From NCBI GenBank assembly GCA_047495785.1, contig JBLDXI010000029.1, positions 2,728,001-2,792,000 of the forward strand: DNA of 64,000 bases, written 5' to 3'. Each line of letters opens with the position of its first letter. Within the stretch, counting starts at the first letter, position 1. The stretch is from Lepidodermella squamata. Taxonomy: Eukaryota > Animalia > Gastrotricha. Positions 2,689-45,735 of this stretch are shown in pieces. Both the position numbers and the translations under genes were made by a program. Below the pieces are notes generated by a model. It was not told the origin of the DNA. It saw nothing but the letters and a program-made list of their open reading frames with translations, and ran no database searches.

Positions 2689-5611
2689 CTACATCAACGA
2701 AGCTAACAATATGCAGATTAACGACATCGCAGTTTCAAGAGCATAATTTCGATGGGCGCCGCTGGTAACGTCAGAAGCAGTAACGAGTTTAGGCTTTCCA
2801 TTAGGCCCATCTCTATTGCAGTCAAGTCCAACAGCAGCAGTTGGTGGGGATCGACAAGCTTCGGTTACTTGCCTCATTTCCTTCGCCGACAGGGGTGAAT
2901 CGTAGACTGAGATACAGGCCATATTGTCACCTTCCATCAAGCCGTACTTCGTATTGGTTTCGCGATCTAAAGCCCCTCCGACTACAATCGACGGCACCCA
3001 CTGAATGGCCGAGTCTGATGCGTAGAACAGCCTCCGATCGACATTTGTTGAATTCGAGTACATGGTATTCGTATCATATCCAAGGTTCAAGTAGTAGGAA
3101 ACAATAAGAGTAATCGATTTATGGAATTGGTAAATCGTCAATTGCTGATCACTCGAATTATAAGTAAGTCCAATGAAATTCCAGGCCCAGCAGAGATCTG
3201 GTAAAGCTAGAGACGCTGCGACACTGCTGTTCCTTTTGTTGTAAACTTTGATATTGAGCATGTAGTCCTTTGTGCAATGAAGGGTTAGAAACGAGTTCTC
3301 CAGTTCCATCTCAAAAAGTCCACTAGGCCGGCCATCGCCTCGATCTGGCTTTCCACTACCTCGGTAGCTCACACTTTCGAAGAAAGCAACTGAAAATCCT
3401 GTTGGTTTCAGTGGTACCATTGTCTTGTACACAGCCAGAGTTTTATTTTCCCTCGTGTCCATATCACTGCAGCAGAAACCAGCAGCAAAGCTGAGGTAGC
3501 CGGAAAATTCTCCGTAGGGCGAACTACTATCCAAAGCAGCACTATACGATTTGCTATCTGGTTTTATCCCGCAAATTGCGTCGTTCAGTTGCGTGCTTTT
3601 GTCCAGATATGGCGCAAATACAAGAGATTTAGGATTCGGCCATGGAACACCACGTTGTACTGAAAGAAATAACTATTGGTTAGATGCACATTGAAAAAGA
3701 CAGGTTGCTGTAACCTTCTTATTACAACATCATGAACAGGTGGCAAAGATGTTATGTAATAGGTACTTGATATATATTAGCTGGCGAAATTGAAATTATG
3801 ATTATCATGTGACGTACTAGGACGTCGGGGCTCCTATCTCCACATACAAAATTCTCGTCACGTGCCGGAATAATGCAAATGATTCACGTAACCGCGGACT
3901 AAACATAGTTATTTAATGGCAAATTGAAAATTATTTATTTTAATTATTTTTGGTTATTTATTTTGGTTATTTTGGTTAATCGGAATTATAAAAAAATCCC
4001 AGATTTGTAAAGATTACTTAAAGATTCGTTTTTCATACGCAGAAAAAATGGCTTGAGATTATTGCTAAAACGCTCAAGTCGGGGCCCATATTAGTTCCGT
4101 TCGGCCCCCAAGCGTCAGTTGCGCAATTGGATGGTGAAAGTGGGCTCAACGCAAAACACCAAGTCGAAATTTTGAATGGAATTTCGGCCTAAAAGGTCTA
4201 TTTTCGAGGCGTTGGCCCAAGCACGGCGGAGAACTATGGGAACCAGTGCTATTGTTGGGCACTCGCCGTACCCGGGCCGCCGGGTTCGGGCCGGGACTTG
4301 ATACAGTTATCGGGTCGGGCGTTGGTTGTAGGATGATCCAAGCCCGAGTAAAGCGCTGGTTTCTATTGTTGTCCGCCGTGCCAACACCTTGGGCGGCGGC
4401 CGGCCCGTGTGCGGTGGAGCGTGATTCTTTCGAATTTGTTAAATTTACAGTGAACGTCGCATACGGGCATGTTTTAAAGCGGCCCGAGCTCGGAGCTGCA
4501 AATCATTCTTACCCGTCCGCGCACGACCAGAATTCGGGCTGGGGCCTCATTCTCGCGCGGAAAATTAAAATAAATCAGTTTTACACCACCTTTTTGCGCG
4601 CAAGTCATTCACAGGAAAATTTCCTTATCACCTCGCTTTTTCCATATCACCTCGCGCCTCAAAAGGGATTTAAACAAGCCTAAATACGAGTTATTCAACG
4701 ACGCTAACGATATCGCATACCATATGCAGTGTTGTCAACGAATGCAGCCATCTTACTTACCGTTTCCGTCACGCTTGCAGTCAACTGTCGGGGATTTCTT
4801 AGGAGCCTCACGACATGATTCCGGCAATAGCCCGATTTCTTTCGAATTCAATGCGGCATTGAACATCGAGAAACAGAACAAGTTCTGTCCGGGCCGGAAT
4901 CCCCATTCTCGGTAAACATCCCTATCCAAAGCATTACCGAGCGTTACTTGACTCCATTCTCCGCCGATTTGCACGGGCTTGGACATATTGCCAGAAGCCG
5001 ACTTTGTTGAATTGGTCTTAGGATCGATGACAAAGGCCGTTAGTTGGCTCGCTGAACTATCGTGGGATATCGCAAAAAATCGCCAATTATCAACCCCACA
5101 AGCGCTTGAGACGTTGAGCTTGATTGTCATATTTATATCGTCCTTATCAAAAATTTTGACGATCAGGTCATCTGACAAGCAGACAACTGTTAGAAATGAC
5201 TTGTCGGTTTCAAGTTCCAGCAAACCAGCATCAGTGTTAGGCAATGATCTCAGGTAAAACGATAGTGTGAAGCTAGGCTTTATCGGAATGGGACGATAGA
5301 TTGTTAGATAGTCCCAATTTCTTCCAATGTCTGTACTCAAAGAGTACGAACCAGATTGATTGTTAAATGGGTCGTTTCTCGGTATAAATGCGGCATAAGA
5401 GCTCGTGTTTACTGGAGCTAAGTTGCAGATTCTATCATTTAAATCGTTGTTTCTGTCCATCTGGGCATGAAATACTAAAGCGTCGAGTCTCGGCCAGGCA
5501 ATGGCTGCTGTCGAAATTGATGTACAGTTAGCATTCAAAATTGTATTAGTGCATGATCATACCTGGAGCTAAAGACCCGAATGATAACAATACAAGATAA
5601 ACCGGCTTCAT
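2689..5611 (-). CDS. Array copy 1: tandem LamG/ConA-like (pentraxin-like) two-domain, putatively GPI-anchored glycoprotein, about 588 aa
   Basis: Exons 5611-5563 (MKPVYLVLLSFGSLAP signal peptide), 5507-4761 and 3659-2689 join in frame through phase-1 GT-AG introns. LamG_3-like motifs SFTLSFYL, WRFFAISHDS, QIGG, MFNAALNSKEI. Hydrophobic C-terminus without a cytoplasmic tail. Confidence 0.85.
4072..4560. mobile_element. Truncated longer member of the MULE-like MITE family seen at 48600, inside intron 2 of copy 1
   Basis: gctcaagtcggggcccatattagttccg...cccccaagcgtc..ttgcgcaattgg matches the left arm of 48600-48737; right boundary approximate. Confidence 0.55.
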
Positions 5612-6369
5612 CACGACGCAGCTGGGCAAGTTAAATCAATAAGATTTTAAACTGATCCACACTTTCAATAAATTCAAGGCCGACGCCGTGTCAAGCATGC
5701 ATGTGATGTAAATGCCATTGACACAGCAGCTTTTCATGTTAATAATGTTGAGTCAATAGTATTAATACCTTTAATACGGATGAAATATTACGGAGCATGT
5801 CGTCGTGAATGTGATTCAATATGTCAAATGTACCTAGATTATCATTTGCGGCTTTGTCGCCAAGAGAACGCGGCATTCAAGAGCAAATATTAGAAAGTTG
5901 GCTTTTTACGCGAAAATTGCTATGCTACGATCTTGGATGCCGGAGCTGCCATGGAAGCAAAATTTTTTTGTTGATGTATTTGTGAAAGTTACTCATATTA
6001 CTCAAAATGCTCAACATGTGCTCAGAAACACAACGTGTGCCCAACCTTAACCGCGGTCCACCCAAGTCACTGGTGCCATAGAGAACAGAAGTACAAGAGA
6101 GAAACTTGAAACATTAATTCGAAGCGGTTTTCTTCGAGCGGGATCTTTTGTGGATAGAAATGGTCAGCAGACCACTTATACTTCGACCCTACTACAATTT
6201 ATGTTGAAGGAATCGCGTTCGTCATTAGATCATTTGATAGTCATTAGATTTTTCTGAATCACTCATTTATTACATTAATAGGAATCTGTCAATCGCCAAA
6301 ATGTCCAACATTCACAATTCTATTAAGAAAAAATTATGAAAAGGAACAGAAGTAGCATATTTATAAGAA

Positions 6370-7806: not shown

Positions 7807-7898
7807 TTTATAAGAACCATCAGGATGAGCAACATCGAAACATCAGGTTATAGAAGACTTCATAATTATATTATTTATCAGGCTGGTATTAATTGATC

Positions 7899-10800
7899 CA
7901 TTTATTATTTTTATTTATTTATTTATTTATTTAAGAGCATTTATCCCACAGTTGAGAGCTCGGTTATAAAAAATTGTCAATAAGAAAAAAGGTAGCAACA
8001 AGTCATGATTATTCGGTCCTGTTCAGAATTCAAGAGTCAAGTAGATGTACAAAAAATTAACAATTATTTGAGATCGACAGCAGCTTGCTATATACACGTT
8101 CATCCGTTATTGAAATCAGGTGTTTATAAACAATTTGACGGCACGCGTTCGCGCTGTGGCAAGCATTAAATCCACAAGTACAAGCCGGAGGCAATTCAGT
8201 ATAAGCAAGAATATCAATAGGACGATGGTAAGGACAATGTATGTACAAAGGAAGTTTGTTAAAAAAAGTAGGACCCCGATAAGCGAGGCTAATCTGACCC
8301 GTTTTCAGCCGCATGTTGGGAATTTTGAATGTCAGTCGGGCACCACGTGTTTGCCGAATGGCCTGATTTGCTGAAAAAATAGATTGTACGGACTTGGGGG
8401 CTTGGTCGACCAAACAGCGATACATTAAGGTGGCTAAATGAACGCCTCGTTTGCCCTTTAGGTCTAGCCATCCCAATTCTTTTCGTAAGGTCTTAGCGTC
8501 GGCATGATCTGGGGCGTTCATGATTATACGGACAGCCCTATTTTGAAGGCTTTGCATTCTTTGCAAAGACGTATCACATGCCTCACCGACAACTGTGTCG
8601 CAGTAATGCAGATGCGAAAAGATGAGCCCATTTGCCATGGCTTTGAGACAATTTCGGTTTAAGCCATTTTGCGCTGCTAATTTCAGTGCGAAAAGCCCTT
8701 TTCTCGCCTTAGCACATGCCTTTTCGACATGGTCATTGAAAATTAGTTTGTTATCTAAAATGACGCCCAGCAATGTCATCGAGTTTGTCTGATCGATTTT
8801 CTTCCCATCGATTTTGATTTCAATTTTTGGTTCTGATGAACTGTAAGAGATAATCATCAATTGGGATTTTTTCCCGTTTACTTTCAGTGAGTTGCTGCCC
8901 AGCCATTTTACAACTTCGTCTATGTCCTTCTGCAGTGTGGCCTGGACTTCGGAGTCATTTTTTGCGGAAAAATATATTGTTGTGTCGTCTGCGTACTGTA
9001 CCACGTACGATTTTTCGGAAGCACTCGGGAGTTCATTAATATAGATGATAAACAGTAGCGGCCCAAGCACACCCTGAGCAACAATTTCGGGCCTTTCAAC
9101 TGCCTAAATCAAAAAAACTAAATATGCAAATTAGCGAGAGTTTGTCTGAGGACAGTATTCTGTTGAAAGTGTAGTTTTTTGCGGAGCTGGGCCAGCGGAA
9201 CCGCGGTGAGAGTTTCGCTGTGAGAAATGGTTTCTATATTGCGCAGTCACTTGCTCGTCGCCAATAGAACTTTCACTTCGGGCAGTTTTTACTGAAAAAA
9301 CGTGGCTTGCACTGCTTCAAAAAAGACAGTTTAAAACGGAAATCCTTGGATGCCAGTTTCATTTTATTCATCAAAAATGAATCAATTGCAAAAATAAAAA
9401 ATTGTCAAGTTAATTGTGGATGCTGTTTCACGAGACGCCATGCTCGAATAGCTGCTTTGACTGCGACCACTGCGCCACTGCGACAGGCCCGAAGAAACTA
9501 TGGAAATAAATAACAATTAATAATTGAAATTAATTAAACAGGAAAATACCTACCTGTCAATTTTTCATCGACACCGTTACGAATTGTTGACCGACTGGTT
9601 AAGACTGGTTTGGCAGCAGAGTCGATTAGCGGGACAAACCTTCAACGCAATTGCGGGTAAATTAAAGAAAATGGAATTAATTTCAAAATTACCTTAAAAA
9701 TTCGATAAATATCTGACTTGTCCAAATTGCATGATCGACACACCTGGTAGCAAGGCGGCGGGGATTGATGAAGCTGAAAATGCGAAATTGAGGCCGGACG
9801 AAAAATTCTTACTAAATAGGTATTTGATGTTTTGGAATTAAAAACAAAAATGAGATGATTTGAATGAACCAAAAAGCCACATTTTTGAAGCATGGCGTGA
9901 TTACGCAACACCCCGAGGCTTGTGTGCACAACAATCGAGCGCCATAATAACAATGATTTTGCCCTATTTCAGCTTTTATTTAGAACGACAATTTTCAGTC
10001 ATTACAAATTTGGCTTTTACGAAATATCTAAATTATCGAATTTTGCTGGCATTCTTATATTCTTGATGGTTCAGGCTGAAAACGACAAAAATTCGGTTAT
10101 TTTCAGGATCCAGGTAAATAATTAGGAAAAATTAGGATAAAAAATCGGGAAAAAACGAGAAATTTTATGATCGAGCCAGGGAATTTTCCGCGAAAAAACT
10201 AGAGGTCGAGGCATCGAATTTCGTTCACTTTCGTTCACTACTTCTCACTTCGCAGTGAAAATAACGGAAAATCGTAAGTTTTTTCAACGGCGACGAAGAA
10301 ATATTTTCACCTGGCAGTTAACTTCGGGTCTCGGGTGGCAAAACGCCGAATTTCCCAAGTTTCATGAAAAAAACTGTGCCAATTTCGCGAAGTGACTGGT
10401 TTCCAGCTTTAACTTCAAGTTTTTTCCAAAAACTGCAGTAAGTTTCGAAAAAAGATGAAAAATGACAGTAAACGGCGTTTTCTGGCAGTTTCCTGCAATT
10501 CCCACTGGAACTTCGCAGTATTTCGCAAAAAACGTGCACTTGCTGCTCAGGGGCAGAGCCCTGGGGAACGCCATACGCCATGTCTGAGCGTAGCAGTTTC
10601 TGAGTATTGCTTGTTTATTTTGGTTATTTGCTGGCGGTCAGAGAGGTAGCTAGTTATGAGGTCGATAGCTGATTGGTCGAATCCTGCGCTTACCAGAGAG
10701 TTTAGGATCCCAACAGTACTCAAAGTATCAAAAGCCTTGCTCATGTCTATGCTAATTACTGCTGTAGTAAGTCCATTGTCCAGGGCGGTACGCCAGTCTG

Positions 10801-11960
10801 TTGTCATTTTAGCTAAGCAGGTATCAGTGGAATGAAATTTTCTAAACCCGAATTGTGATTGCGACAGAAAGTCGATCCTATGAAGATACGTCTTAATTTG
10901 AATTGACAGACATCGCTCGAAAGTGCGGAGTAGTGGTGATAGAATGGAAATAGGCCTGTAGTTGCTGACTAAGTTTTTAGGTCCATCTTTGTGTATCGGA
11001 GTGACAGTAGCGGTTTTCCAAGCATTCGGTATCCTACGTTCGATCAGAATTTTGTTGAATATTAGAGCGAGGTGAGGTGCTAAGAAATCTCCCAGCGATT
11101 TAAGAACGCATTCAGGGACTCCGTCCGAGGCGGTTGTAGGCTTAGTTGTCGATAAGTTGTTTAAACATTGCTTCACGGTAGCCACTGGTATCGTTTGAGT
11201 AATCCTTGCCGAGGGAATTCAATTGCTCAGCAATCGTTGGTTTTTCTGTTGTTACCACCATGGCGATTCCTCGATGATCGCTAACTCCTTCGGTCGCTCC
11301 TGTGAGCGCGATTTTTTTCGAACTAAAATTTGTACAAAAGTAGTCGAGCATTGTATTCGAAGCTGGCCTAGTTATTGTTCTTGTAAAGCTCAATTCTAGT
11401 CCCAGCGGGCTGATAACTACCTTGAAGTCGTGTTCATTGTCAATATTCATGAGATTTAGGTTAAAATCACCCCCAAAAACGTAATTTTGAGCAGTCGGAA
11501 AACGGGCCTTAACTTTCGCAAAGAGATCATGAAGTAAAAAGTAATCATCGTCGGTTGGTTCAGTGAATTTTGGTCTGTAGACACAGGTGATAGCAGTGGT
11601 TCCTCCTTTATCAGCCTTTACAAGAACAGTGACATTCTCAATGTAAGCACAAGGAATAGAGGCATCATCTAACACAAGGTACGATTTGCTTACAAGAATT
11701 CCAACTCCACCACCCACGTTCTGATTCACATTGTCCGTTGCCGGACGTAGTTTCCAGTAGCCTTTGTGAGAGGGGAAATTTTCTTCAATGTCGCTAGCAA
11801 TCGCACTAGGCCTATTTTTGCTTACTTCGCTAACGTCAGGCATATTCACTTCACAGAACATCAGAACGTCGGGCCTTATAACATCGAGAAATGAGAGCAT
11901 ATAAAATATTTTGCTACGTAGTCCTCGCAGATTGAAGCATTGAATAGAAAAATACGAGTC
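7899..11960 (-). mobile_element. Defective CR1/L2/Jockey-group LINE (APE endonuclease + reverse transcriptase)
   Basis: EN motifs CFNLRGL, GDFN, LDY, SDH (11142-11960). RT motifs PIHKDG, NYRPISIL, QFGFR, DMSKAFD, GVPQGS (10554-11185), then VLGPLLF and YADD (8057-9071). (TAAA)n tail at about 7899-7932. Frameshifts, a shortened EN-RT linker and an insertion disrupt it. Confidence 0.9.
9072..10553. mobile_element. Non-autonomous DNA transposon inserted in the LINE RT (CCC termini, 2-bp TSD, CACTA/Mirage-like)
   Basis: TIRs ccctgagcaacaa / ttgctgctcaggg(g) flanked by CA on both sides; removal restores PQGS-VLGP. Confidence 0.8.
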
Positions 11961-12910: not shown

Positions 12911-12944
12911 TTAGGTTTGCTATTTAGGTTTGGAAAAAGTCGAG

Positions 12945-14560: not shown

Positions 14561-16465
14561 CTACATCACCGTAGATAACAAGATGCAAGTCAAAGCCATT
14601 AAGGTTTCTGCAGCATAAATTCGATTGGCATCACTGGTAGAGCCGCTAGCAGATTTACCGGAAGAAGCAGTAACGATTTTAGGCTTTCCATTCGGCCCAT
14701 CTCTGTTGCAGTCGAGCCCAACAGCAGCAGTTGGTGGAGATCGGCAAGCTTCGGTTACTTGCCGCATTTCCTTCGCCGACAGGGGTGAATCATAGACTGA
14801 GACACAAGCTATGTTGTCGTTCGCAATCATACCATACTGGATATTGGTCTCGCGATCTAAGGCTCCTCCGACTACAATTGATGGCACCCATTGAATGGCC
14901 GAGTCTGATGCGTAGAACAGCTTCCGGTCGACAGACGTCGAATTCGCGCCCAAGCTATTCATATCATATCCGAGTTTCGAGTAGTCGAAAACAACTAGAG
15001 TGTTCGATTTATGAAACTGGTGAACCGTCAACTTCTGATCGCTTGAATTATACGTAAGGCCAATGAAATTCCAGGCCCAGCAGAGATCTGGTAAAGCTAG
15101 AGACGCTGCGACACTACTGTTCCTTTTGTCGAAAACTCTGATATTAAGCATGAAGTCCTCTGAGCAATGAAGCGTGAGAAACGAGTTTCCTAGCTCCATC
15201 TCAAACAATCCGATAAGCCGACCACCGCGCCGAGAGACCGCGTCGCTTCCTAAACTATCGCGGTTCCCAGCTGCGAAGAAAGACACAGAAAATCCTGCTG
15301 GTTTCAATGGCACCATCGACTTGTAGTAGGCCAAGGTTCTATTTTCAGTTCTGGACATTGCACTGCAGCACTGTCCAGTCATGAAGCTGTAATAGCCTGA
15401 AAATTGTCCGTAGGGCGAATACTCATCGAGAAAGGCACTTTGCGATCGGCTATACGGGGCGACCCCGCAAATTGTGTCGTTCAGCCGTGAAATATCGCCA
15501 AGGTACGGGGCAAATACTAGAGAATTAGGGTTTGGCCATGGAACGCCGAGTTGAACTAAGAAACAAATTATTCGTGTATTTCATTGTCGCTGTCAGCTGT
15601 CGAATCTCTTACCATTTCCTTCGCGCTTGCAATCAAATGCGGGAGACTTTCGAGGAGCTTCGCGGCAGGCTTCTGGCAACTGGCTGATTTCGTTCTCATT
15701 TAAGGCGGCATTGAACATCGAGAAACAGAATAAGTTTTGGCCTGTTCCGAATCCAAAATCAAGATACAAGTCCCTATCCAAAGCTTCCCCGAGCGTTAGT
15801 TGACTCCATTCTCCACCGATCTGGAAGGGTTTGCTAGTGTTACTAGATGCGGATTTCTTTGATTTTCCATTAAGATCGATGACATAAGCCGTCATTTGGT
15901 TTGCTGTGCTATCGTGGGATATCGCGAAATACCGCCAAATATTATCACCGCAAGTGCTCGAGACATTGAGCTTGATAGTGGCATTTATGTCGTCCTTATC
16001 GAAAACTTTAACAAAAAGTTCATTTGAAAGGCACGCAGCTGTTAGAAATGACTTGTCAGTTTCAAGTTCAAGTAGTCCAGCGGAACTGGCCGAGGACAAG
16101 TAAAACGATATAGTGAAGCTTTGTTTTATCGGAACAGGGCGATAGATCGTAAGGTAGTTCCTTTTTTTCACAATGCTTCGACTTCGAGAGTACGAACCAG
16201 CTTGAGAGCCAAACGGGTTTTTGCTAGCGTCGAATGCGGCGAAAGCGCTTGTGTTTACTGGAGCTAGGTTGCAGATTGTGTCGTTCAAATCGTTGTCTCT
16301 GTCCATCTGGGCGTGGAATACTAATGACTCGAGTTTCGGCCAGGCAGTAGCTGCTGCAGAACCTTCATTTTAAATCTCAATTGCATTTTATATTCACGTG
16401 TGAATAATTATACCTGATACCAAATACCCGATTGTTAATACTAGAAGGTTAGACAGCTTCAGCAT
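14561..16465 (-). CDS. Array copy 2: two-LamG-like-domain GPI-type protein, about 598 aa
   Basis: Exons 16465-16414, 16362-15613 and 15555-14561; introns of 51 and 57 nt; in frame; signal peptide MLKLSNLLVLTIGYLVS. Confidence 0.85.
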
Positions 16466-19824: not shown

Positions 19825-22800
19825 CTACATCCCCGTAGCTAAAACGATACATGTCAACGCCATTAAAATTTCACCAGCATAATTTCGACTAGCATCACTG
19901 GTTGAGTCGCTGGCAGATTTACCGGAAGAAGCAGTAACGAGTTTAGGCTGGCCATTAGGCCCATCTCTATTGCAGTCAAGCCCAGTAGCGGCAGTTGGTG
20001 GAGATCGACAAGCTTCGGTTAGTTGCCGCATTTCCTTCGCCGACAAGGGGGAATCGTAGATCGTAACACAGGCCATATTGTCATTTTCCATCAAGCCGTA
20101 CTTTGTATTGTTCTCGCGATCTAACGCCCCTCCAACTACAATCGATGGAACCCATTGAATGGCCGAGTCTGATGCGTAGAACAGCTTCCGATCGACAGTT
20201 GTCGAATTCGCGCCCAAGCTATTCATATCATATCGAAGTTGCGAGTAGTCGAAAACAATAAGAGTGCTCGATTAATGAAATTGGTAAATCGTCAATTTCT
20301 CATCACTCGAATTATAAGTAAGGCCAATAAAACTCCAGGCCCAGCAGAGATCTGGTAAAGCCAGTGATGCCGCGACACTACTGTTCCTTTTGTCGTAAAC
20401 TTTGACATTAAGCATGTAGTCCTTTGAGCAATGAAGGGTTAGAATATGTTAGAATAAATGTGACAATCATGCTCAACGTCTCAAGGGCTTGCAGGATGAA
20501 AAGTTGGCGATTTTTCGCGATTTCCTACGACAGCTCAACGAGCCAACTGACGGCTTATGTCTTCGATCCTAAGACCAATTTAATAAAGTCGGCTTCTGGC
20601 AATATGTCCAAACCCCTGCTGATCGGCGGAGACTGGAGTCAGTTAACGCTCGGTGATGTTTTGGATAGGGATGCTTACCGAGAATGGGGATTCCGAACTG
20701 GCCAGAACTTGTTCTGCTTCTCGATGTTCAACGCCGCTCTGAATTCGAGTGAAATCGGCCAGTTGCCGGGATCATGTCGCGAAGCTCCTAAGAAATCACC
20801 GACAGTTGACTGCAGGCGTGACGGCAACGGTAAGTTCGATGACTTTATTCATAAGCAACACTACATCATGTAGGCATCTATTGTGTGTACGCCTTTAGAT
20901 TATCTGATCTAACAGCTTAAGTTAAGATCCGTACGATCACCACCCCGTTGGACAAAATAAAAAATGAAATCAAAAGGTCGCGCGGCGTTAACAATTATGT
21001 TGCGCGACATTCCGAATTAATTTCCGCGACGTTTTCGGTTTCTCTCAGCGTAAATAATTCGGTTCTATTTTCAAAAATGTTTACTCATTCTGTTAAAAAA
21101 CATCAAGATTGTGAATTTAGCTGCCAGCATTCCAAGGTTTATACCCGTTTTATAGTTCCGGAGTGATTTTTGCGAGTTGCGATTTTTTTCGAGTGATTTT
21201 TGAACGACTTGACGACCATGATTTTTAGGAAGATTTTTTTTGCTTCCAGAAGCATTTTAATGTCGAAATGCTATCAGTGTCGAGTCCATATAGTACTAGC
21301 AATAGCAGGGGGCGGCTCTTCCGTCCGGCCATCCAAAATATAGAGAAACCGCAGAGAATGCTGGCAGCTAAATTCACAATCTTGATGTTTTTTAACAGAA
21401 TGAGTAAACATTTTTGAAAATAGAACCGAATTATTTACGCTGAGAGAAACCGAAAACGTCGCGGAAATTAATTCGGAATGTCGCGCAACATAATTGTTAA
21501 CGCCGCGCGACCTTTTGATTTCATTTTTTATTTTGTCCAACGGGGTGGTGATCGTACGGATCTTAACTTAAGCTGTTAGATCAGATAATCTAAAGGCGTA
21601 CACACAATAGATGCCTACATGATGTAGTGTTGCTTATGAATAAAGTCATCGAACTTACCGTTGCCGTCACGCCTGCAGTCAACTGTCGGTGATTTCTTAG
21701 GAGCTTCGCGACATGATCCCGGCAACTGGCCGATTTCACTCGAATTCAGAGCGGCGTTGAACATCGAGAAGCAGAACAAGTTCTGGCCAGTTCGGAATCC
21801 CCATTCTCGGTAAGCATCCCTATCCAAAACATCACCGAGCGTTAACTGACTCCAGTCTCCGCCGATCAGCAGGGGTTTGGACATATTGCCAGAAGCCGAC
21901 TTTATTAAATTGGTCTTAGGATCGAACACATAAGCCGTCAGTTGGCTCGTTGAGCTGTCGTAGGAAATCGCGAAAAATCGCCAACTTTTCATCCTGCAAG
22001 CCCTTGAGACGTTGAGCATGATTGTCACATTTATATCGTCCTTGTCAAAAACGTTGACGATAAGCTCATTTGACAGGCAGACAGCTGTTAGAAATGACTT
22101 GTCAGTTTCAAGTTCGAGCAAACCAGCAGCAGTGTCCGGCAATGACTTCAGGGATAGGTAAAAGGATAGCGTGAAGAGGGAAGAGCCGCCCCCTGCTATT
22201 GCTAGTACTATATGGACTCGACACTGATAGCATTTCGACATTAAAATGCTTCTGGAAGCAAAAAAAATCTTCCTAAAAATCATGGTCGTCAAGTCGTTCA
22301 AAAATCACTCGAAAAAAATCGCAACTCGCAAAAATCACTCCGGAACTATAAAACGGGTATAAACCTTGGAATGCTGGCAGCTAAATTCACAATCTTGATG
22401 TTTTTTAACAGAATGAGTAAACATTTTTGAAAATAGAACCGAATTATTTACGCTGAGAGAAACCGAAAACGTCGCGGAAATTAATTCGGAATGTCGCGCA
22501 ACATAATTGTTAACGCCGCGCGACCTTTTGATTTCATTTTTTATTTTGTCCAACGGGGTGGTGATCGTACGGATCTTAACTTAAGCTGTTAGATCAGATA
22601 ATCTAAAGGCGTACACACAATAGATGCCTACATGATGTAGTGTTGCTTATGAATAAAGTCATCGAACTTACCGTTGCCGTCACGCCTGCAGTCAACTGTC
22701 GGTGATTTCTTAGGAGCTTCGCGACATGATCCCGGCAACTGGCCGATTTCACTCGAATTCAGAGCGGCGTTGAACATCGAGAAGCAGAACAAGTTCTGGC

Positions 22801-23539
22801 CAGTTCGGAATCCCCATTCTCGGTAAGCATCCCTATCCAAAACATCACCGAGCGTTAACTGACTCCAGTCTCCGCCGATCAGCAGGGGTTTGGACATATT
22901 GCCAGAAGCCGACTTTATTAAATTGGTCTTAGGATCGAAGACATAAGCCGTCAGTTGGCTCGTTGAGCTGTCGTAGGAAATCGCGAAAAATCGCCAACTT
23001 TTCATCCTGCAAGCCCTTGAGACGTTGAGCATGATTGTCACATTTATATCGTCCTTGTCAAAAACGTTGACGATAAGCTCATTTGACAGGCAGACAGCTG
23101 TTAGAAATGACTTGTCAGTTTCAAGTTCGAGCAAACCAGCAGCAGTGTCCGGCAATGACTTCAGGGATAGGTAAAAGGATAGCGTGAAGCTAGGCTTAAT
23201 CGGAACAGGACGATAGATCGAAAGGTAGTCCCAGTTTTCTCCAATGTCTGTACTCAACGAGTACGAACCAGTTAGATCGCCGAACGGGTTGTTTCCAGGG
23301 ACAAATGCGGCATAAGAGCTCGTGTTTACTGGAGCAAGGTTGCAAATCCTATCGTTCAAATCGTTATTTCTGTCCATCTGGGCATGGAATACTAAAGCGT
23401 CGAGTCTTGGCCAGGCGGTGGCTGCCGTGGAACCTTATAATAGCGAATACCATTAACATTTCAAATTATATTCGAGCATGATCATACCTGGAGATAAAAA
23501 CCCGATTGATAATAATACAAGATAAATCCGCTTCATCAT
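19825..23539 (-). pseudogene. Array copy 3/4: LamG-like gene disrupted by an inverted triplication and a deletion
   Basis: Exon 1 (23539-23488) and exon 2 (23433-22672) are intact. Extra partial exon-2 copies lie at 21356-22176 (direct) and 20455-21322 (inverted). Only the 3' part of exon 3 remains (20444-19825), with AAA>TAA at 20272-20274. Confidence 0.8.
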
Positions 23540-24298
23540 GATGGAGCTGGAAGAGTTGAATCAATAAGAATTGATACTGACCCACACAAAAAATAAATTC
23601 AAGGCCGTCGCCTTGTAAATCACAAAAGTGATAGATATGCCTTTGACACAGCAGCTTTCAATAGGCCTAAAGAATGTCAATACTCATGAAATATTACGGC
23701 GCATATGTCGTCGTGAATGAGATTTACTAAGCTCTCAGGTATAATGTACCTAGAAAGTATTTGCGGCTAGAGAAGTCGCCAAGAGAACACGGCATTCAGG
23801 AGCACATATTAGCAATTGGGTCAAGCTATTCGTGCTTGACTATGCACGCGAAATCATCCAAGTTTTTTTATCGCGCGAAAAAATTGTCGGCAATGAGGAA
23901 AAGGATCGCATGTCGTCAAGCCATCCATGTTTGCTCATTGGTTTGGCACTAGCCCTAGTCACCAAAGATCACAAGTTCGATTCCACAAGGCACGGTTTTT
24001 TTCTTCGTGAACGTAATATTGCAAAAAAAGATTTTTTGAATTAGCGAATGTTCGTTTGTGTCATGGCTCCCGTCATATCAGCAAATAGTCAAGTGATGAT
24101 TTGTTACAAAACACTGCTAACAAGCAAGTCGGCTTGAATGTTCTAGACGAATGAATTGGTGATTTGGCACGCGTTTGAAATTAGAAATTATCGACAATGA
24201 GTTTTTGCTGAACAATTGAACAATTTGCTGGATGCTGAAAGCTGAACAAGCACCCCTGGCAGAGTAAAAATAAATAAATTAAATAAATAATAATAATG

Positions 24299-27627: not shown

Positions 27628-29240
27628 CACGGTGCAGCTGTGCGAGCTTAATCAATAATATTTGATACTGACCCAAACTAAAAATAAATTCACGGCCGTC
27701 GCCTTGTGATCGTATCGTAAAAAATGGTTTATATATATGCTATTGTCACGGCTAATTATCTTTGTAAATTACAAAAAATGGGTCACATGCCATTGACAAA
27801 GCATCAAATAGGCAATTGGTTCTAAGAAAGTGAAATAGGCGGCTATTTTTGCCTCCAGGAGAACTGGTCATTCAGGGGCAAGACAGACATTCAGAAATAA
27901 ACGAGGTTATTTGCTTAACAATTTGCTGAACAATAGCTTCCCCTGGAAGAGTAAAAAAAAGCATCTTGAATAAATAAATAACAATAATAATAATAACAAT
28001 CAATCCTCAATCCTCAATCATTTACCATTTAGTATTCCATCAATGAGTTTATGGTATTTGCGAATGAAAAAACCACGAAAAGCCTGAAGCGTGCACCTTA
28101 TTTATTCTCAACAATCTAAGATAAAAACCATTGATCTGTAAAGATCGAGAGATCACGCCGCCTTAGCTTGCGGGGTTAACACTTTTAGGCATGTGTATCG
28201 TTTATCGTCTTCAGCTTATTCAAACTAAATTGCGTCCGCCTTCATCATTGACATTTTCTTCTTTATTAGAGAGCAAAACTTATTCGAACAACAACACATT
28301 TACGGCTGAAATCCCCTTTGTCCCGCGTCGAATTTGAAATTGGTCAGGGATTCTCATAATATTGCCTGACTGAATTTGTTTCATGAGATTTAAATCTTGC
28401 GGGTTTTTCAGCAGCAAAACATGCATATAGAGCCCTAGAAGAGGCCAGTTTTGAGGCAAAAGGGTCGAAGGCGAAATTCGTGGAAGGAATTCCGGGAAAT
28501 ATCGCGGGCTCCTTTTGACATAGTACTCGGGAGGAAGCTGTTACCTTCTTCGCATTACGCGTATACCTTGTATACCGCTAAAAAAAGGCGAAAAATCACA
28601 TGGGAGGAGCGATTTCAAAAGAATAGCATCGCAAAAAGGTGTGTCCTGCAGGCAATTGTTCACCCAGGACTGGTTTTTATTGTGTAATAATCGCGTAACA
28701 TAAGTTACATACGTACATACATACAGTGTATTTTAGTCTATTTCTAAAGAATATTCTAAAGAATAAGCTGAAGCTGTACCCGCACGTGATTTTAGTAGTG
28801 AAATTCCGCGCGCGACAATTGAAAGCGCCAACTTTCCAAGCAACTTTCGAATTTCCCAAATTTTTTACTTCCATTGCAAAATACATCAAATATCTAATGT
28901 AGAATTGATAATGGGCTTCTAGCTCGTAAAACTGAAAGCAATCTTTGTGTACTTGTGCTCAAAATTTGGTGTCTAAACACGCAAGTTACTAGGGCGCGCT
29001 TTACTTTGAATGCGCGTAAACAAATTTGGCTTTACATTTTCCGATCGAGAAACTTATATTCAGTCGATTCTAAATTTGATATAAAAACCATGGGAAATTC
29101 GATTGTTAGCCTATATTATCGAGCGCGTGGAAGAGACCTAGGCGGCCTGTGCCGACCAATTTCCTACAGCTCAGATAACACATCTCAGATAAATTACCGG
29201 AAAGTATAATATAAAATATCCGAGGCAATTAATAACAACT

Positions 29241-31166
29241 CTACATCACCATAACTAACAAGATGAATAACAGCGCCAGTAAAGATTCAGACACGTAATT
29301 TCGATTGGCGCCAGTAGTAGAATCCCTAGTGGGAGAAGAGGTTACGCCACTAATCAAACCACCAGTAGATTTAACAGAAGCTGTAACGAGTTTAGACGTT
29401 CCATTCGGCCCATCTCTATTGCAGTCGAGTCCAACAGCAGCAGATGGTGGAGATCGACAAGCTTCGGTTATTTGCCTCATTTCCTTCGCCGACAGGGGTG
29501 AATCGTAGACTGAGACACAGGCCATATGGTCACCTTCCACCATGCCGTACTTAGTATTGTTCTCGCGATCTAAAGCTCCTCCGACAACAATCGACGGCAC
29601 CCATTGAATGGCCGAGTCTGATGCGTAAAACAACTTCCGATCGACAGTTGTTGAATTCGAGCGCAACGTATTAAAATCAAATGTAAAGTTCGAGAAGTCA
29701 AAATAAAGATATGGGCTTCTTTTGTGAAATTGATAAACCGTCAACTTCTGATCGCTTGAATTATACGTAAGGCCAATGAAAGTCCACTCCCTGCAGAGAT
29801 TAGGTAAAGCTAGGGATGCTGCGACACTACTGTTCCGTTTGTCGTAAACTTTGATATTAAGCATGTAGTCCTCTGAGCAATGAAGGGTTAGAAACGAGTT
29901 TCCCAGCTCCATCTCAAACAGTCCACTAGGCAGGCGACCGCGCCAATCTGGATTAATACGACCTTGGCCACTCGCATCTGCGAAGAAAGAGGCTGAAAAT
30001 CCTGATGGTTTCAGTGGCACCATTGTCTTGTAAGCAGCCAGGGTTTTATTATGACTCCTGTTGATACAGCAGTAGCTAACTGCGAAGCTGTAGTAGTCGG
30101 AACCGTACGGCGAAATGCTTTCACGCACAGCAGTATCTGATATGCTATCCGGCTTGATTCCGCAGATTGTGTCGTTCATTTGCGATTTTTTGTCCAGATA
30201 AGGAGCAAATACAAGAGATTTTGGATTCGGCCACTGAACGCCGAGTTGAACTGAAAACAGTGAGAGATTTAGTTGATTGTAGTTATACCATAATTTTTGT
30301 TTGAATCTAATTTTCCTATATAGGTTCCTGCCACTGAACTTACCGTTTCCGTCACGCTTGCAATCAACCGTCGGGGATTTCTTAGGAGCTTCGCGGCACG
30401 ATTCGGTTAATTGGCCGATTTCACTCGAATTCAAGGCGGCGTTGAACATCGAGAAGCAGAACAAGTTCTGGCCATTTTGGTATACCCAAACATTGTAAGC
30501 ATCCTCATGCAAAGCATCGCCGAGCATTAATTGACTCCAGTCTCCGCCGATCGGCAGGGGTTTGAACATATAGCCAGTAACCGACTTTATTAAATTGGTC
30601 TTAGGATCGAAGACATAAGCCGTCAGTTGGCTCGTTGAGCTATCGTGGGATATCGCAAAAAACCGCCAACTATAATCCCCACAAGCGCTTGAGACGTTGA
30701 GCCTGATTGTTGTATTTAATTCGTCCTTGTCGAAAACTTTGACGATAAGGTCATTTGACAGGCAGACAGCTGTTACGATAGACTTGTCGGTTTCAAGTTC
30801 CAGCAAGCCACCATCACTATTAGGCGAAGATTTCCGGTAAAACGATAGCGTGAAGCTGGGCTTTATCGGAACAGGGCGATAGATCGAAAGGTAGTCCCAG
30901 TTTCTTCCCCTATTTGTATTCAAAGAGTAAGAACCAGTTAATTGCCCGAACGGGTTGTTTCCAGGGACGAATCGGGCGAACTCGCTTGTGTTAACTGGTG
31001 CTAGGTTGCATATTCTGTCATTCGTATCGTTATTTCTGTCCAAGTGGGCATGTAATACTAATGCGTCGAGTCTTGGCCAGGCAGTGGTTGCTGCAGTACC
31101 TTCGAGCATGATCATACCTGGAGCTAAATACCCGATTGATAACAATACAAGATACAGCGACTTCAT
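29241..31166 (-). CDS. Array copy 6: two-LamG-like-domain GPI-type protein
   Basis: Continuous ORF from ATG 31166; intron 1 shrunk to 18 nt (31100-31117); intron 2 is 93 nt (30251-30343); both are in frame and stop-free. Confidence 0.88.
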   Translation of the reverse strand: MKSLYLVLLSIGYLAPGMIMLEGTAATTAWPRLDALVLHAHLDRNNDTNDRICNLAPVNTSEFARFVPGNNPFGQLTGSYSLNTNRGRNWDYLSIYRPVPIKPSFTLSFYRKSSPNSDGGLLELETDKSIVTAVCLSNDLIVKVFDKDELNTTIRLNVSSACGDYSWRFFAISHDSSTSQLTAYVFDPKTNLIKSVTGYMFKPLPIGGDWSQLMLGDALHEDAYNVWVYQNGQNLFCFSMFNAALNSSEIGQLTESCREAPKKSPTVDCKRDGNGKFSGRNLYRKIRFKQKLWYNYNQLNLSLFSVQLGVQWPNPKSLVFAPYLDKKSQMNDTICGIKPDSISDTAVRESISPYGSDYYSFAVSYCCINRSHNKTLAAYKTMVPLKPSGFSASFFADASGQGRINPDWRGRLPSGLFEMELGNSFLTLHCSEDYMLNIKVYDKRNSSVAASLALPNLCREWTFIGLTYNSSDQKLTVYQFHKRSPYLYFDFSNFTFDFNTLRSNSTTVDRKLFYASDSAIQWVPSIVVGGALDRENNTKYGMVEGDHMACVSVYDSPLSAKEMRQITEACRSPPSAAVGLDCNRDGPNGTSKLVTASVKSTGGLISGVTSSPTRDSTTGANRNYVSESLLALLFILLVMVM

Positions 31167-31620
31167 CACGATGCAGCTGGGCGCGTTGACTCAATAAGAT
31201 TTGATACTGACCCACACAAAAAATAAATTCAAGGCCGGCGCCTTGTAAATCACAAAAAATGATGTATATGCTATTGACACAGCAGCTATTCATGTTCTAA
31301 TAGGCCTAAAGAATGTGAATACTGATGAAATATTACGTCGCATGTGATCGTAATTCAATGTAATTCATGTAATTCAATATGCTCAAAGGTATAGTGTACC
31401 TGGAAAATTATCTTTGAAAATTACAAAAAATGGGTCACATGCAATTGACACAGCAGCAAATAGGCAATATGCCCAAAGAAAGTGATAATAGACCGGAGTG
31501 TCCTCTCCTGGAAAGTTTGAAATTTATGAACTGGATGAACTACTAGAAAATCCAACAGACCAAATGTCAAAAAATGGTGGTTGGAAACTAAAAGGCTAGG
31601 AGGCAAAAATAATGACAAAT

Positions 31621-32262: not shown

Positions 32263-34368
32263 CTAAATCAAGTCGTTTAAACCTCCGTGAGACAAATCTC
32301 CAAATAGATATCGTCCACTGTAGTTGTCGAATGAGCATACTAATGGTTCCGTTTTAGGCACGAATCTCCGAGTTGGAGCTAGCGAAAAGTGCGAAGCTGA
32401 TTCTCCAAAGCCGCTGCGGCTGATGACCAAGGCATCCATCTCAATCAATATCAGCCAGTCCAGCCACGATTTCCCAGCCTGAAGCCATATCAAATCGTTC
32501 ATTAGATCCGTCTCAGGCAACATATCGATATGCTGAACAGTTAGGTTTTGCATTCCATCAGTTGAGAATATTTTTATCCGGCTGGAATTTACGATGCCTG
32601 GGCCAAGTAAATTCAGAATTTCGCTGTAAGTTATCGCCCAATCTGTTGTCATGAAAAGCGTGACATTATTCCCACGAAAGTCGGGAGAATCTAGCACGCG
32701 AAGAACTTCGTTCGCGTAGCATTTCAGCTCTGGAAGCCGTGACATGTCATGAAGGTTGTCAATATCTGAAATGATCGGATAGCATGAGATATTTGAAATT
32801 ACTGAGCAGTAACAGTTGGCAAGTGGATTTGGACCATTATGTACCAGTTTTGAAATTGCTGGAATGTGAGGTAAGGACAAACCGTGGAGTGCTTCGGGTT
32901 CATTAGGGGTATTGTTCCTATAGCCAACAGAAAACCACTTACATAATTACATAAAATTACGTGAATTTTGCAGGGATCCGATAAATTTGCAAATCAACAG
33001 GGGGGACCCTTACGTTTTTCAGAAATTTTCGAATGCCAGGGGGTTTTACTGTCTCAATTTTATGCCAAAAGATTCCCCGTGTTTCAATGTACTACAAAGC
33101 CAAATTGCCTCCAAGAATGTAGTCAAAAAATGAATGCGAAGTAGCATTTCGAAAATTTGGCTACTATGCTAAATAGGTCAGTTGACTAGGCCTGATCTGG
33201 ATTTGACATATTTTTCCGATTCCGGAAAACAATTTGCGAAAATAACCAGTCCACCAGTCGTTTTTACGTTTCTCGGAGCTCAACTATTGTAATTGAAAAT
33301 AACGAGAAGGAACTAGAACTTAAAAATGCTCAAAAATGTGAAAATTGCGTCAAAATCCCATGGTTCAATAGTTACCAGTCATTCGGTGGAACACACTTGT
33401 TTTTCCTACTTACACAAAGTCCGAATTTGAAGACCAAGTTTGATAGAATTATCCCAAAACTCGCGACCAACTGTATTGGATATCACGCTGTTGTATAGCT
33501 CTTTCAACTTTGCGTTAGGTCGGCCGAACATGAGGCGGATCGCGGCTGAAATCGCGACGTTCAAGTCATCGCTGTAGCTCATCAATCCAGGTGCTGATTG
33601 ATTAAAGTTGGCTTGAAAAGCCTTATTCCGCAAAATCGTATCTAGACCAGCATGCCGGTTACTCTTAATCTTCAGATCGCTATACTGCTCATGCTCTTCT
33701 ATAAATTTCTCGTTGGAAAGAAGTTCCATATACGGTTCGTCGGGTAAGTCTCCTTGATGCAACAGCCATTTAATATTTTCTGAGCGTTTCGCGGTGACTT
33801 TTTGAAACGTCGCAGCATCCACGTCGTAGAAATGCTCGTTCATTTCAAAATAATCAGCTGCATCCGATGGTCTTTGCCATTCCATGTTGAAAACGCGGCC
33901 AGTGCCTATTGCGAGGTAAAAGGCAATGACAGCGCCTCGAAGTCGATCTCCGAGACCGTGGCATTCAGGCCGTTTTATTTTGCACTTGGCCGAAGGATCA
34001 CGACCACTCAGAGATGGGAACATAAAGTCGTAACACGTGTCGTTGCCAAGCTTTGGGAATCTGCAGGTAGTCGTAAGTAACTTGAGCGATTCGCCTCGCC
34101 TCATTTTCTGTGCCATCACCTTGAAATAGTGCTCAGTGATGGATTTGGCCAGATCAATAGCTTTCCCTGGTTTCGGCGAGATTTCGATAGGATGATCATA
34201 TTCATCCATAGAAACCTACTGGTCATATTCAGGCGATTCAGAGATAGGTCCAGAGATAGCGACATGTGAACTGGGAATTTGCTGGCGAGAGAGAAATGCG
34301 ATTGCAAGCAAAGCTACAACAGCTGCAACTGAGGCTACTAAAAATTTGTGTGCATCATTCTGAGCCAT
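32263..34368 (-). pseudogene. GT-B fucosyltransferase-superfamily gene (GT11/GT23/GT37-like), type II membrane protein, apparently disrupted
   Basis: Signal anchor FLVASVAAVVALLAIAFL from ATG 34368. Motifs GLGDRLRG, LGLQIR, LFMTTD and DWLILIEMDALVISRSGFG. In-frame TAG at 34216-34218; insertion at 32944-33407. Confidence 0.7.
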
Positions 34369-35541: not shown

Positions 35542-35836
35542 CTTTCCATTTGGCCCATCTCTATTACAGTCGAGTCCTATAGCAGCAGTCGGTGGCGATC
35601 GACAAGCTTCAGTTATTTGCCTCATTTCCTTCGCCGACAGGGGTGAGTCGCAGATCGTAACACGCGTCATATTGTCATTTTCCATCAAGCCGTACTATGT
35701 ATTGGTCTCTCGACCGAAAGTTCATCCGACTGCAATCTGCAATCGATGGCACCCATTGAATGGCCGAGTCTGATGCGTAAAACGGCTTCCGATCGACAGT
35801 TGTAGAATTTGAGTACATTGTATTCATATCAAACGT
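35542..35836 (-). pseudogene. Fragment of array exon 3
   Basis: FDMNTMYSNSTTVDRKP..ASDSAIQWVPSI and SPLSAKEMRQITEACRSPPTAAIGLDCNRDGPNGK, with indels. Confidence 0.85.
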
Positions 35837-35842
35837 ATTGAA

Positions 35843-36033: not shown

Positions 36034-36106
36034 GTGAATCTACAACCTTTCCATTCCCGCTCGCCCTTGAGCCGGAAGTTCTCACCTGTCTGCAGATCCA
36101 AATATA

Positions 36107-43591: not shown

Positions 43592-45735
43592 ATGATGAAG
43601 CCGACTGACCTTTTGTTACTATCAATCGCGTGTTTAGCATCAGGTATGCTTATGCAGGAATAGAAATGCAAACTGTACTCTGCGCTGTTATAAGGTACTG
43701 CAGCAGCCACTGCCTGGCCAAGACTCGACGCTTTAGTATTCCATGTCCAGATGGACAGAAATAACGATTTGAACGATAGAATTTGCAACCTAGCTCCAGT
43801 AAACACGAGCTCTTATGCCGCATTTGTCCCAAGAAACAACCCCTTCGGCGATCTAACTGGTTCGTACTCGTTGAGTACCGACATTGGAAGAAATTGGGAC
43901 TACTTAACGATCTATCGCCCTGTTCCGATCAAGCCTAGCTTCACACTATCGTTTTACCTGAAATCATTGCCCGACACTGCTGCTGGTTTACTGGAACTTG
44001 AAACCGACAAGTCCTTCTTAACAGCTGTCTGCTTTTCGAAAGACCTTATCGTCAAAGTATTCGACAAGGACGATATAAATATGACAATTAGGCTCAACGT
44101 CTCAAGCGCTTGCGGGGTCGATAGTTGGCGATATTTCGCGATATCCCACGATAGCTCAGCGAGCCAACTGACGGCTTACGTCATCGATCCTAAGACCAAT
44201 TCAACAAAGTCGGCTTCTGGCAATATGTCCAAACCCCTGCTGATCGGCGGAGACTGGAGTCAGTTAACGCTCGGTGATGCTTTGGATAGGGATGCTTACC
44301 GAGAATGGGGATTCCGAACTGGCCAGGACTTGTTCTGCTTCTCGATGTTCAACGCCGCCTTGAATTCCAGTGAAATCCGCCTATTACCCGAATCGTGCCA
44401 CGAAGCTCCTCAGAAATCTCCGACAGTTGACTGCAAGCGTGATGGAAGCCGTAAGTTCGATGGCTTCCTTCTTAGATTATGTGATGTGTGATGAAATAAT
44501 TCGAATTGAATAAGAAATGTCACACTTCAGTTTCATTTTTAGTGAGCTACAAAAACCTGTAGAAAGCGTACTCTCGATTCGGCTTCTTGCACCATAGAGA
44601 AGAATTGACATGTTACGGCTGTAGGTCAAGAAGATTCCTTTGATTCTAAATTTCTTAATTCCGTTACAAAGCGATTTATTTATGGCTTAATGTTTCAAAG
44701 TTAAAGTTTTGGCTATCTTTTTACAAAAAACTTATTGATCTTTATTCAGTGCAACTCGGCGTTCCATGGCCGCAACCTAAATCTCTTGTATTCGCCCCTT
44801 ATCTGGACAGAAACTCGCAACTGAACGACACAATCTGCGGAATCAAGCCCGATAGCAGATCGAATAGTGCTTCGTTGGAGGCTAGTTCGCCATACGGAGA
44901 AGATTCCGGCTACTTCAGCTTCGCAGTTGGTTACTGCTGTATCAATATGAAAATGAGTGATAATAAAACCCTGGCTGCCTACAAAACGATGGTACCGCTG
45001 AAACTAGCCGGATTCTCTGTCTCGTTCTTCGCAAGTGTGAGCGGCCAAGGTAGTGGAGATCCAGCTTTCGACGATGGCCGGCCTAGTGGACTGTTTGAGA
45101 TGGAGCTGGCGAACTCGTTTCTCACGCTTCATTGCGCAAAGGACTACACGCTCTATGTCAAAGTTTTCGACAAAAGAACCAGCAGTGTCGCAGCGTCTCT
45201 AGCTATCCCGAAATTCTGCTATGCGTGGAAGTTTTATGGCGTGACTTACAATTCAAGCGATCAGAAGTTGACGGTTTACCAATTCTATAAAACTAGCACA
45301 TTGCTTATTTTGGATTACTCGAAAATCACGTTTGATATGAATACAATGTACTCAAATTCGACAATTGTCGATCGGAAGCTGTTCTACGAATCTGACTCGG
45401 CCATTCAATGGGTGCCATCGATTGTTGTCGGAGGAGCTTTAGATCGCGAGAACAATACTAAGTACGGGTTGATGGAGAATGACAATATGGCCTGTGTAAC
45501 GATCTACGATTCCCCCTTGTCAGCGAAGGAAATGAGGCAAGTAACTGAAGCTTGCCGATCTCCACCTACTGCTGCTGTTGGACTTGACTGTAATAGAGAT
45601 GGCCCTAATGGCCAGCCTAAACTCGTTACATCTTCCGGTAAATCTAGTTACGGATCTAATAGTGGAGCTAATCGAAGCTATGAGTCTGAATCTTCACTGG
45701 CGTTTTTATGCATCTTGTTAGCTACGGTGATGTAG
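43592..45735 (+). CDS. Array copy 8 (opposite orientation): two-LamG-like-domain GPI-type protein, about 597 aa
   Basis: Exons 43592-43643, 43695-44450 and 44750-45735 join in frame; signal peptide and hydrophobic C-terminus present. Confidence 0.87.

Follow-up and report, generated by a model that had tools for sequence, protein, structure and literature searches.

An array of predicted GPI-type proteins with twin LamG-like domains and paralogue-specific loops in the gastrotrich Lepidodermella squamata

We describe an array of genes in the gastrotrich Lepidodermella squamata that we read, with moderate confidence, as encoding membrane-tethered binding proteins built on a twin laminin G (LamG) scaffold, with a paralogue-specific rim of loops on the membrane-proximal domain, B. 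The array lies in a stretch of 64,000 nucleotides (the window; C29:2728001-2792000, contig JBLDXI010000029.1) of a 121-Mb, 151-contig genome; the window has a GC content of ~42%, and its introns are short. A preliminary description of this DNA had proposed an expanding array of receptor-like frames with hypervariable loops. The array itself is real: using the 642-aa frame of its fifth unit (c5) as the query, tblastn resolved region 2689-45735 of the window into six gene units (c1 to c6) and one relic. Two further copies, u1 and u2, lie immediately upstream of the window on C29, and at least 20 family loci are found on seven contigs of the genome. The peptides quoted in the preliminary description are all present, namely, five segments following FS(V/A)(S/A)FF, five following CC, and two framework blocks.

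Gene architecture and predicted fold

Each gene comprises three exons, which encode a signal peptide, domain A (~255 residues), and domain B (~290 residues) followed by a Ser/Thr-rich stalk and a hydrophobic C terminus. The A and B exons were analyzed separately, by genomic reference. By inspection, exon 1 encodes M-K-x and a hydrophobic stretch of ~12 residues ending in A-P-G in all six copies; it ends at a GT donor. Intron 1 was measured in two copies, c1 (55 nt) and c4 (62 nt); in c5 it has shrunk to 27 nt. Intron 2 is a phase 1 intron (GTAAGT ... TTTCAG) of 93 nt to 1.1 kb, the extremes being c5, where it is in frame, and c1. Splice sites and frames are conserved across the six copies. The 642-aa frame of c5 does exist, although it is unbroken only because neither intron (27 nt and 93 nt) shifts the frame or contains a stop. 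Domains A and B are ~27 to 30% identical over their whole length, and the gene therefore arose by internal duplication; in this respect, the tandem LamG domains of the preliminary description (A and B, ~27% identical) stand.

Five two-domain genes have open frames (c1, c2, c4, c5, and c6), and four of these (c1, c2, c5, and c6) are complete. On the minus strand, c1 occupies 2689-5611, with the ATG of its signal-peptide exon at 5611-5609, the A exon at ~4750-5514, and the B exon, stalk, and hydrophobic tail at 2689-3669; its A and B exons are both open, and its GT..AG junctions preserve the frame. Also on the minus strand, c2 (14561-16462) consists of exon 1, an A exon (15608-16360), a short intron, and a B exon with its tail (14561-15547), while c5 (29241-31166) has A at ~30315-31097 and B at 29241-30242 in a single continuous frame. 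The orientation of c6 (43595-45735) is inverted: it runs on the plus strand, with exon 1, an A exon (43697-44464), an intron of ~290 nt, and a B exon with its tail (44698-45735). The A-B intron of c1 also holds an insert of ~1 kb (window 3700-4700) that is GC rich and missing from the other copies; it is probably a small transposable element.

The fifth open gene, c4 (25590-27627, minus strand), retains exon 1, an A exon (26755-27522), and a B exon (25590-26543), but it has lost the hydrophobic tail. Its A and B frames are open, as the preliminary description had it, whereas a premature stop lies in the stalk and a 14-nt insertion disrupts the former tail, so that "intact" applies to the domains only. 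Judging from these changes, c4 may encode a secreted form or may be an early pseudogene.

The C termini of c1, c2, c5, c6, and u1 show, by inspection, small residues (S/G/A/N), a polar spacer of ~7 residues, and 13 to 17 hydrophobic residues, with no cytoplasmic tail. This layout resembles a classical glycosylphosphatidylinositol (GPI) attachment signal. Together with the signal peptide, it supports, for c1, c2, c5, and c6 but not for c4, the GPI-type prediction made earlier. The same stalk and tail also close divergent members with one or two domains on contigs C46, C6, C34, C7, and C33 and are a trait of the family. Domain B contains eight conserved cysteines and five conserved N-glycosylation sequons, which would fit an extracellular protein. 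About 100 nt upstream of the ATG are also conserved in c1, c3, c4, and c5, and much less so in c2 and c6; these stretches (window 31170-31270, 27631-27730, 23540-23640, and 5612-5710, minus strand; e.g., ACAAGGCG.CGGCC.TGAATTTATT and GTCAGTATCAA) probably represent a shared promoter.

Direct sequence searches were uninformative about the fold. The 642-aa frame gave no match in Pfam, in a phmmer search of the PDB, or in a word-based protein search; the copies in the window gave no match to PF13385 (Laminin_G_3; gathering score, 27.6 bits) even at E values up to 1; and Rfam and tandem-repeat scans returned nothing relevant. When 1.84 billion representative proteins were searched with a profile of the A and B exons, 39 weak relatives were recovered, the best with an E value of 2.5e-12 and none closer. 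When the 10 best profile matches were scanned, 7 carried PF13385 over the matched region, 6 of them above the cut-off; among these 10 proteins, the metagenome relatives P0001 and P0012 have the domain fused to trypsin-like domains, and P0003 has it fused to a Cys-loop ligand-binding domain. Within this genome, 6 of 39 family members match PF13385 directly (best E value, 1.5e-5), and the family profile matches the LamG-like structure 4qvs_A (E value, 0.0017) with the typical C-terminal pattern aligned. The homology of the window copies to PF13385 would thus be a transitive one.

Relatives derived from metagenomes share the N-terminal elements W-P, S-L, D, and G-P-F-G and the C-terminal pattern G-D-A-x-A-C ... 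E-I-A-Q-L-P ... C. They carry signal peptides, some have hydrophobic tails, and one is located on a compact animal contig, adjoining annexin and Cys-loop receptor genes. Elsewhere in the L. squamata genome, a 727-aa open reading frame (ORF) (L039, C29:234000-240000) contains a distant homologue of the domain, with extra C-terminal sequence.

AlphaFold models of the c5 domains, built on alignments of 39 (B) and 38 (A) family sequences, reached a predicted local distance difference test (pLDDT) score of 86.8 and a predicted template modeling (pTM) score of 0.89 for B (m6bdb3ad8151d) and of 89.5 and 0.90 for A (m83de36fb4c6b). Both models are antiparallel two-sheet jelly rolls of ~200 residues, and structure searches gave the same list for the two. 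The best match is carbohydrate-binding domain 4 of the arabinanase AbnA (5ho0/5hon), with Z scores of 17.5 (B) and 18.6 (A) and a root-mean-square deviation of 2.8 to 3.0 over 193 residues. Next come the lectin-like jelly-roll subdomains of bacterial proteins, the lectin domain of trypanosomal sialidase, and the lectin module of PilC (Z scores of 15 to 18), followed by calreticulin, calnexin, and ERGIC-53, by PTX3 (12.5 to 14.1), and by the laminin G-like domains of laminin, agrin, and Gas6 (12 to 14). Hundreds of members of the ConA-like superfamily score above 8. Searches of the ESM Atlas agree, and a shape search yields PF13385 clusters. On these models, both domains are predicted to be ConA-like jelly rolls of the LamG (Laminin_G_3) type, in keeping with the LamG-like fold first suggested; the structural matches would identify the fold only and carry no implication for function.

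The term "pentraxin" in the preliminary description is valid at the superfamily level only. The pentraxin signature, H-x-C-x-[ST]-W-x-[ST] (PROSITE PS00289), was absent from all A and B exons in a regular-expression search, and Z scores to PTX3 (12.5 to 14) are lower than those to LamG_3-type and carbohydrate-binding module domains (17 to 18.6). We rejected membership in the pentraxins, since the signature is missing in all copies and Pfam gives no match.

Loop variation and selection in domain B

Differences between the copies concentrate in four loops of domain B, in discrete segments with indels, as had been noticed at the outset. With domain B numbered on c5, amino-acid identity among the seven paralogues is 77 to 87% in the framework and falls to 36% in V3 (residues 90 to 105, after "FF"), the lowest in B. 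It is 49% in V5 (residues 175 to 193), 53% in V2, the CC loop (residues 56 to 68), and 56% in both V1 (residues 31 to 45) and V4 (residues 147 to 152). In c5, V3 (29928-29975, minus strand) is a 16-residue loop with indels and with pLDDT values below 50 at residues 94 to 99; V5 (29664-29720, minus strand) is a B-specific insertion of 19 residues; and the CC loop is encoded at 30039-30077 (minus strand). Relative to domain A, V3 and V5 are long insertions (16 versus 6 residues and 19 versus 4 residues, respectively), and the length of V3 also varies among more distant members. The homologous loops of domain A are likewise its most variable parts, with a ratio of non-synonymous to synonymous substitution rates (dN/dS, or ω) below 1.

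For the location of these loops, we relied on the predicted topology. Since strands E7 to E12 are connected by 3 to 6 residues and the fold is all antiparallel, successive loops must fall in turn at one end of the sandwich and then at the other. The variable loops would thereby fall on one rim of domain B. We call "top" the loops at residues 90 to 105, 123 to 127, 147 to 152, and 175 to 193 and "bottom" those at residues 78 to 80, 113 to 115, 135 to 138, and 162 to 165. Two conserved sequons, N137 and N161, are located at bottom loops.

Selection was assessed by fixed-ω likelihood-ratio tests on codon partitions, the codons being assigned by predicted secondary structure and not by variability, and on a tiling of B into sixteen 18-codon windows. 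Over whole exons, ω is 0.33 for B and 0.24 for A, and it is 0.18 to 0.33 for the copies overall. The top loops gave an ω of 0.94, the bottom loops 0.10, and the strands 0.25. Among the paralogues, dS is ~0.5 overall and 0.4 to 0.9 inside the blocks that had looked invariant. The paralogues are therefore old and under purifying selection, and the invariance of the framework stems from that selection and not from recent gene conversion. The well-supported pairs (c4,c5), (c6,u1), and (c2,u2) recur in the trees built from the A exon, from the B exon, and from the N- and C-terminal halves of B. Given this agreement and the high framework dS, gene conversion or cassette-type diversification was rejected for now.

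V3 stands apart. In the tiling of B, ω ranged from 0.10 to 0.60 except in the V3 window, where it was 2.6 (likelihood-ratio test against 1, P = 0.004). Taken as a structure-defined loop (residues 90 to 105), V3 gave an ω of 3.0 (P = 7e-4). Further tests gave 5.8 with only the seven C29 paralogues (P = 1.4e-5), 7.1 with gap-free columns only, and 16 with the five copies without indels. Overall, we put the ω of V3 at 2.6 to 7, with P values from 0.004 to 5e-6, and the result was robust in subsets. Only 1 of the 16 windows has an ω above 1, and to regard the hypervariable segments as a group under diversifying selection would be an overstatement, ω being ~0.35 in the CC loop, ~0.4 to 0.5 in V5, and 0.35 to 0.6 across the variable segments other than V3.

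If the array works as we favor, its products would be secreted, disulfide-bonded cell-surface proteins bearing N-glycosylation sequons, in which a signal peptide is followed by the jelly rolls A and B, a Ser/Thr stalk, and a C-terminal hydrophobic signal of the type that is replaced by a GPI anchor. By analogy with LamG/LNS domains and lectins, the variable rim of B may serve as the ligand-binding edge. Each paralogue would then present a different binding surface on a common scaffold, and the family would form a set of tethered binders of glycans or proteins, in the surroundings or on the animal's own surface. The array itself evolves through duplication, decay, and deletion.

Several points weigh against this proposal. 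The dN of V3 (0.56) is no higher than the gene-wide dS (0.51), and the ω of V3 exceeds 1 because the local dS, taken from 18 codons with ~13 synonymous sites, is low; the partition tests thus place V3 above 1, while by the gene-wide measure it evolves at about the neutral rate. An unconstrained, disordered V3, as its low pLDDT at residues 94 to 99 would allow, may look much the same. The remaining variable loops stay below an ω of 1, and the placement of the loops on one rim follows from strand parity and not from coordinates of the model. No conserved acidic and aromatic residues of the sort seen at known sugar sites were identified. As a weaker objection, public protein collections yielded no close relative or transcript-derived protein.

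These points give substance to the main rival, in which the proteins are structural components of a surface coat or cuticle (glycocalyx or epicuticle) and their variable loops are simply unconstrained, with no role in recognition. A near-neutral dN and predicted disorder in V3, and ω values below 1 in all other variable loops, are what such proteins could be expected to show. Three observations speak the other way: with local dS, the likelihood-ratio tests on V3 are significant; the variation appears polarized toward a single rim, and conservation in the domain is highest on the opposite one (ω of 0.10); and B gained its long insertions exactly at the variable loops. We consider a structural role possible, though on balance unlikely, and continue to favor tethered binding proteins.

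Another possibility is that the products are surface-anchored enzymes, ConA-like glucanases or lyases in type, whose substrates are polysaccharides of the cuticle or of food bacteria. The fold is common to GH16 glucanases, carrageenases, and alginate/glucuronan lyases (Z scores of 11 to 13), and an acidic E-x-E strand motif (GL.E.E) is common in the family. Non-catalytic binding modules nevertheless score higher (15 to 18.6), and E-x-E differs from the GH16 motif, E-x-D-x-(x)-E, and varies within the wider family; LamG domains typically have this strand motif too, as L-E-L..G. An enzymatic function is, in our view, very unlikely.

Copy history, the counterpart block, and neighboring elements

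The array has changed through the loss and breakage of copies as well as through duplication. Unit c3 (19828-23536, minus strand) is a patchwork of B and A fragments: a C-terminal part of B with one stop (19828-20445, minus strand), an inverted A fragment (20451-20837, plus strand), a partial A (21651-22175, minus strand), and exon 1 with a full A (22664-23536, minus strand). A relic of a B exon (35545-35836, minus strand; residues ~187 to 281) contains stops and a frameshift. The preliminary description had listed five intact frames, one broken copy, and two relics; five open frames, the broken c3, and one relic can be recovered, the second "relic" being probably a piece of c3.

A block of 50 kb on another contig (C11:1892663-1941860) is collinear with C29:2715959-2776002 (window -12041 to 48002) at 92 to 98.5% identity, whereas its upstream flank is unrelated to that of C29. 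Either it arose by recent segmental duplication, or it is a haplotype left uncollapsed at the end of a contig. The block holds u1, u2, c1, a counterpart of the relic, and a broken c6, but it lacks 23 kb carrying four copies, c2 to c5. The divergence of these four from their sisters far exceeds that between the C29 and C11 blocks, and the most economical account of the two sequences would be a deletion in the C11 block rather than an expansion on C29. The array had been called expanding; its paralogues are old (dS of ~0.4 to 0.9), and the sole recent large change seen is that the C11 block lacks four copies. The birth-and-death mode suggested for it fares better, with a broken c3, a relic, a tail-less c4, and a difference in copy number between the two blocks. 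A second near-identical pair exists in the genome (C29:3895735-3897508 and C46:521225-522998), and such pairs of blocks point either to haplotypes left uncollapsed where contigs end or to segmental duplications of recent date.

The structure of c3 calls for caution about the assembly. It contains 872-nt inverted repeats that are 100% identical (20454-21325 and 22176-23047), as well as 100% identical 679-nt inverted repeats and a 300-nt direct repeat (within 20454-23047), while every other pair of paralogues differs by at least 10%; c3 is therefore either a very recent rearrangement or an artefact of amplification or assembly. Multiple displacement amplification is known to generate inverted chimeras. 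Similarly to c3, the broken counterpart of c6 on C11 is flanked by an inverted duplication (1934960-1935511 and 1937320-1937871), and the palindromes at these two sites could reflect either genuine rearrangement or chimeras formed when the whole genome was amplified. For the probable source assembly, DNA from one animal was amplified by multiple displacement, and the authors detected no chimeric contigs (PMC11660948).

Amplified source DNA, the identical repeats of c3, a C11 block that may be an uncollapsed haplotype, and public collections in which no transcript-derived protein was found together leave some room for the view that the array consists of decaying or untranscribed relics whose layout is partly an artefact of amplification and assembly. 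Such an artefact would explain c3 at most, and not the divergent paralogues. Moreover, five copies keep open frames, splice sites, and ω values of 0.18 to 0.33 across a dS of ~0.5, which is expected only of genes that are expressed and under selection. We regard this explanation as quite improbable.

The counterpart blocks also bear on the allorecognition role proposed in the preliminary description. The counterpart B exons of C29 and C11 differ by 9.5, 10, and 1 non-synonymous changes, of which only 4, 4, and 1, respectively, lie in loops; as far as these sequences tell, the diversity is one between paralogues and not between alleles. That allelic loop variation specifies individuality is extremely improbable, since, despite variable loops, the array layout, and the C29/C11 differences in copy number, the counterparts differ little in their loops, the diversity lies between old paralogues, and L. 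squamata, which is microscopic, lives singly, and reproduces mainly by parthenogenesis, has no obvious need of self/non-self recognition. Neither an immune nor an allorecognition role found any support in the analysis.

Other elements share the window. Between c1 and c2, outside the family, lies a non-long-terminal-repeat (non-LTR) retrotransposon (8057-11900, minus strand) with ORFs for an APE endonuclease (PF03372) and a reverse transcriptase (PF00078). Diversification by a diversity-generating retroelement was rejected, the nearby reverse transcriptase belonging to this ordinary APE-type element. A weaker endonuclease-like ORF is located downstream (54962-56517, plus strand). Inside the array, an unrelated gene with two ORFs of 205 and 267 aa (32263-34209, minus strand) is 92 to 95% conserved in the C11 block and has no Pfam match; its language-model features fall near clusters with FUT8_N_cat, XG_FTase, or O-FucT, and it may be fucosyltransferase-like, which we offer as a lead only. 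Beyond the array, window positions 59700-64000 have a low GC content (~30%) and a run of minus-strand ORFs.

Comparison with known systems and significance

Among known systems, the array is closest to PF13385 Laminin_G_3, as represented by AbnA domain 4 and the S-layer-associated protein 4qvs. It shares with them the same jelly roll (Z scores of 17.5 to 18.6), and the family has the same C-terminal pattern, G..ALD...G....C..Y...L...E. To this it adds an N-terminal extension (WP..SL..D..ND.IC..P..PFG), a conserved set of cysteines, a two-domain arrangement, and a stalk with a hydrophobic tail. The array proteins consist of just two LamG_3-like domains, with no sushi, SEA, cysteine-module, protease, or channel parts.

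The LamG/LNS domains of laminin, agrin, Gas6, and neurexin have the fold in common with the array (Z scores of 12 to 14). LNS domains bind ligands and Ca2+, and carry their splice inserts, on one rim of loops, and Rudenko and colleagues reportedly described in 1999 a "hypervariable surface" on such a rim in neurexin LNS domains; the one-rim variation proposed here for domain B would parallel it. Unlike LNS domains, the array shows no detectable sequence match to PF00054 or PF02210, its variation lies between paralogous genes and not between splice forms, and its products are predicted to be of the GPI type rather than matrix or transmembrane proteins. Pentraxins (PTX3 and the PTX-like domain of ADGRG4) share the jelly roll of the superfamily, with Z scores (12.1 to 14.1) lower than those of LamG_3-type modules.

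The trans-sialidase-like proteins of Trypanosoma cruzi offer a functional analogy only, as a large and diversified GPI-anchored surface family that includes a ConA-like lectin domain. Against the array models, the lectin domain of trypanosomal sialidase reaches Z scores of 14.6 to 15.5. The likeness is confined to the fold, however; the array lacks the sialidase beta-propeller and belongs to an unrelated organism. In the literature, a description of a family such as this one was not found, and the gastrotrich genome paper mentions no lectin, laminin, or gene-family analysis (PMC11660948).

A more specific version of the binding-protein reading can be imagined, in which the array is a germline-encoded repertoire of lipid-anchored recognition receptors, with a positively selected V3 and insertion loops on one rim, and in which paralogues and haplotype copy number give specificities for microbes or food particles. 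We put it forward as speculative and rather doubtful. If true, it would put to use in recognition a fold class for which no such role has so far been described in Spiralia.

Very little is known of gastrotrichs at the molecular level. The array contributes a family of sequences, with its own N-terminal extension, that is beyond the direct reach of Pfam models and that has relatives in unidentified small animals sampled in metagenomes. It also offers a natural experiment on a small scale, in which seven old paralogues have a scaffold in common and a single loop bears a local signature of positive selection. Should the loops have no part in setting specificity, the family would be one more lineage-specific expansion of surface proteins; if they do set ligand specificity, it would provide a tractable example of how the rim of a LamG domain diversifies.

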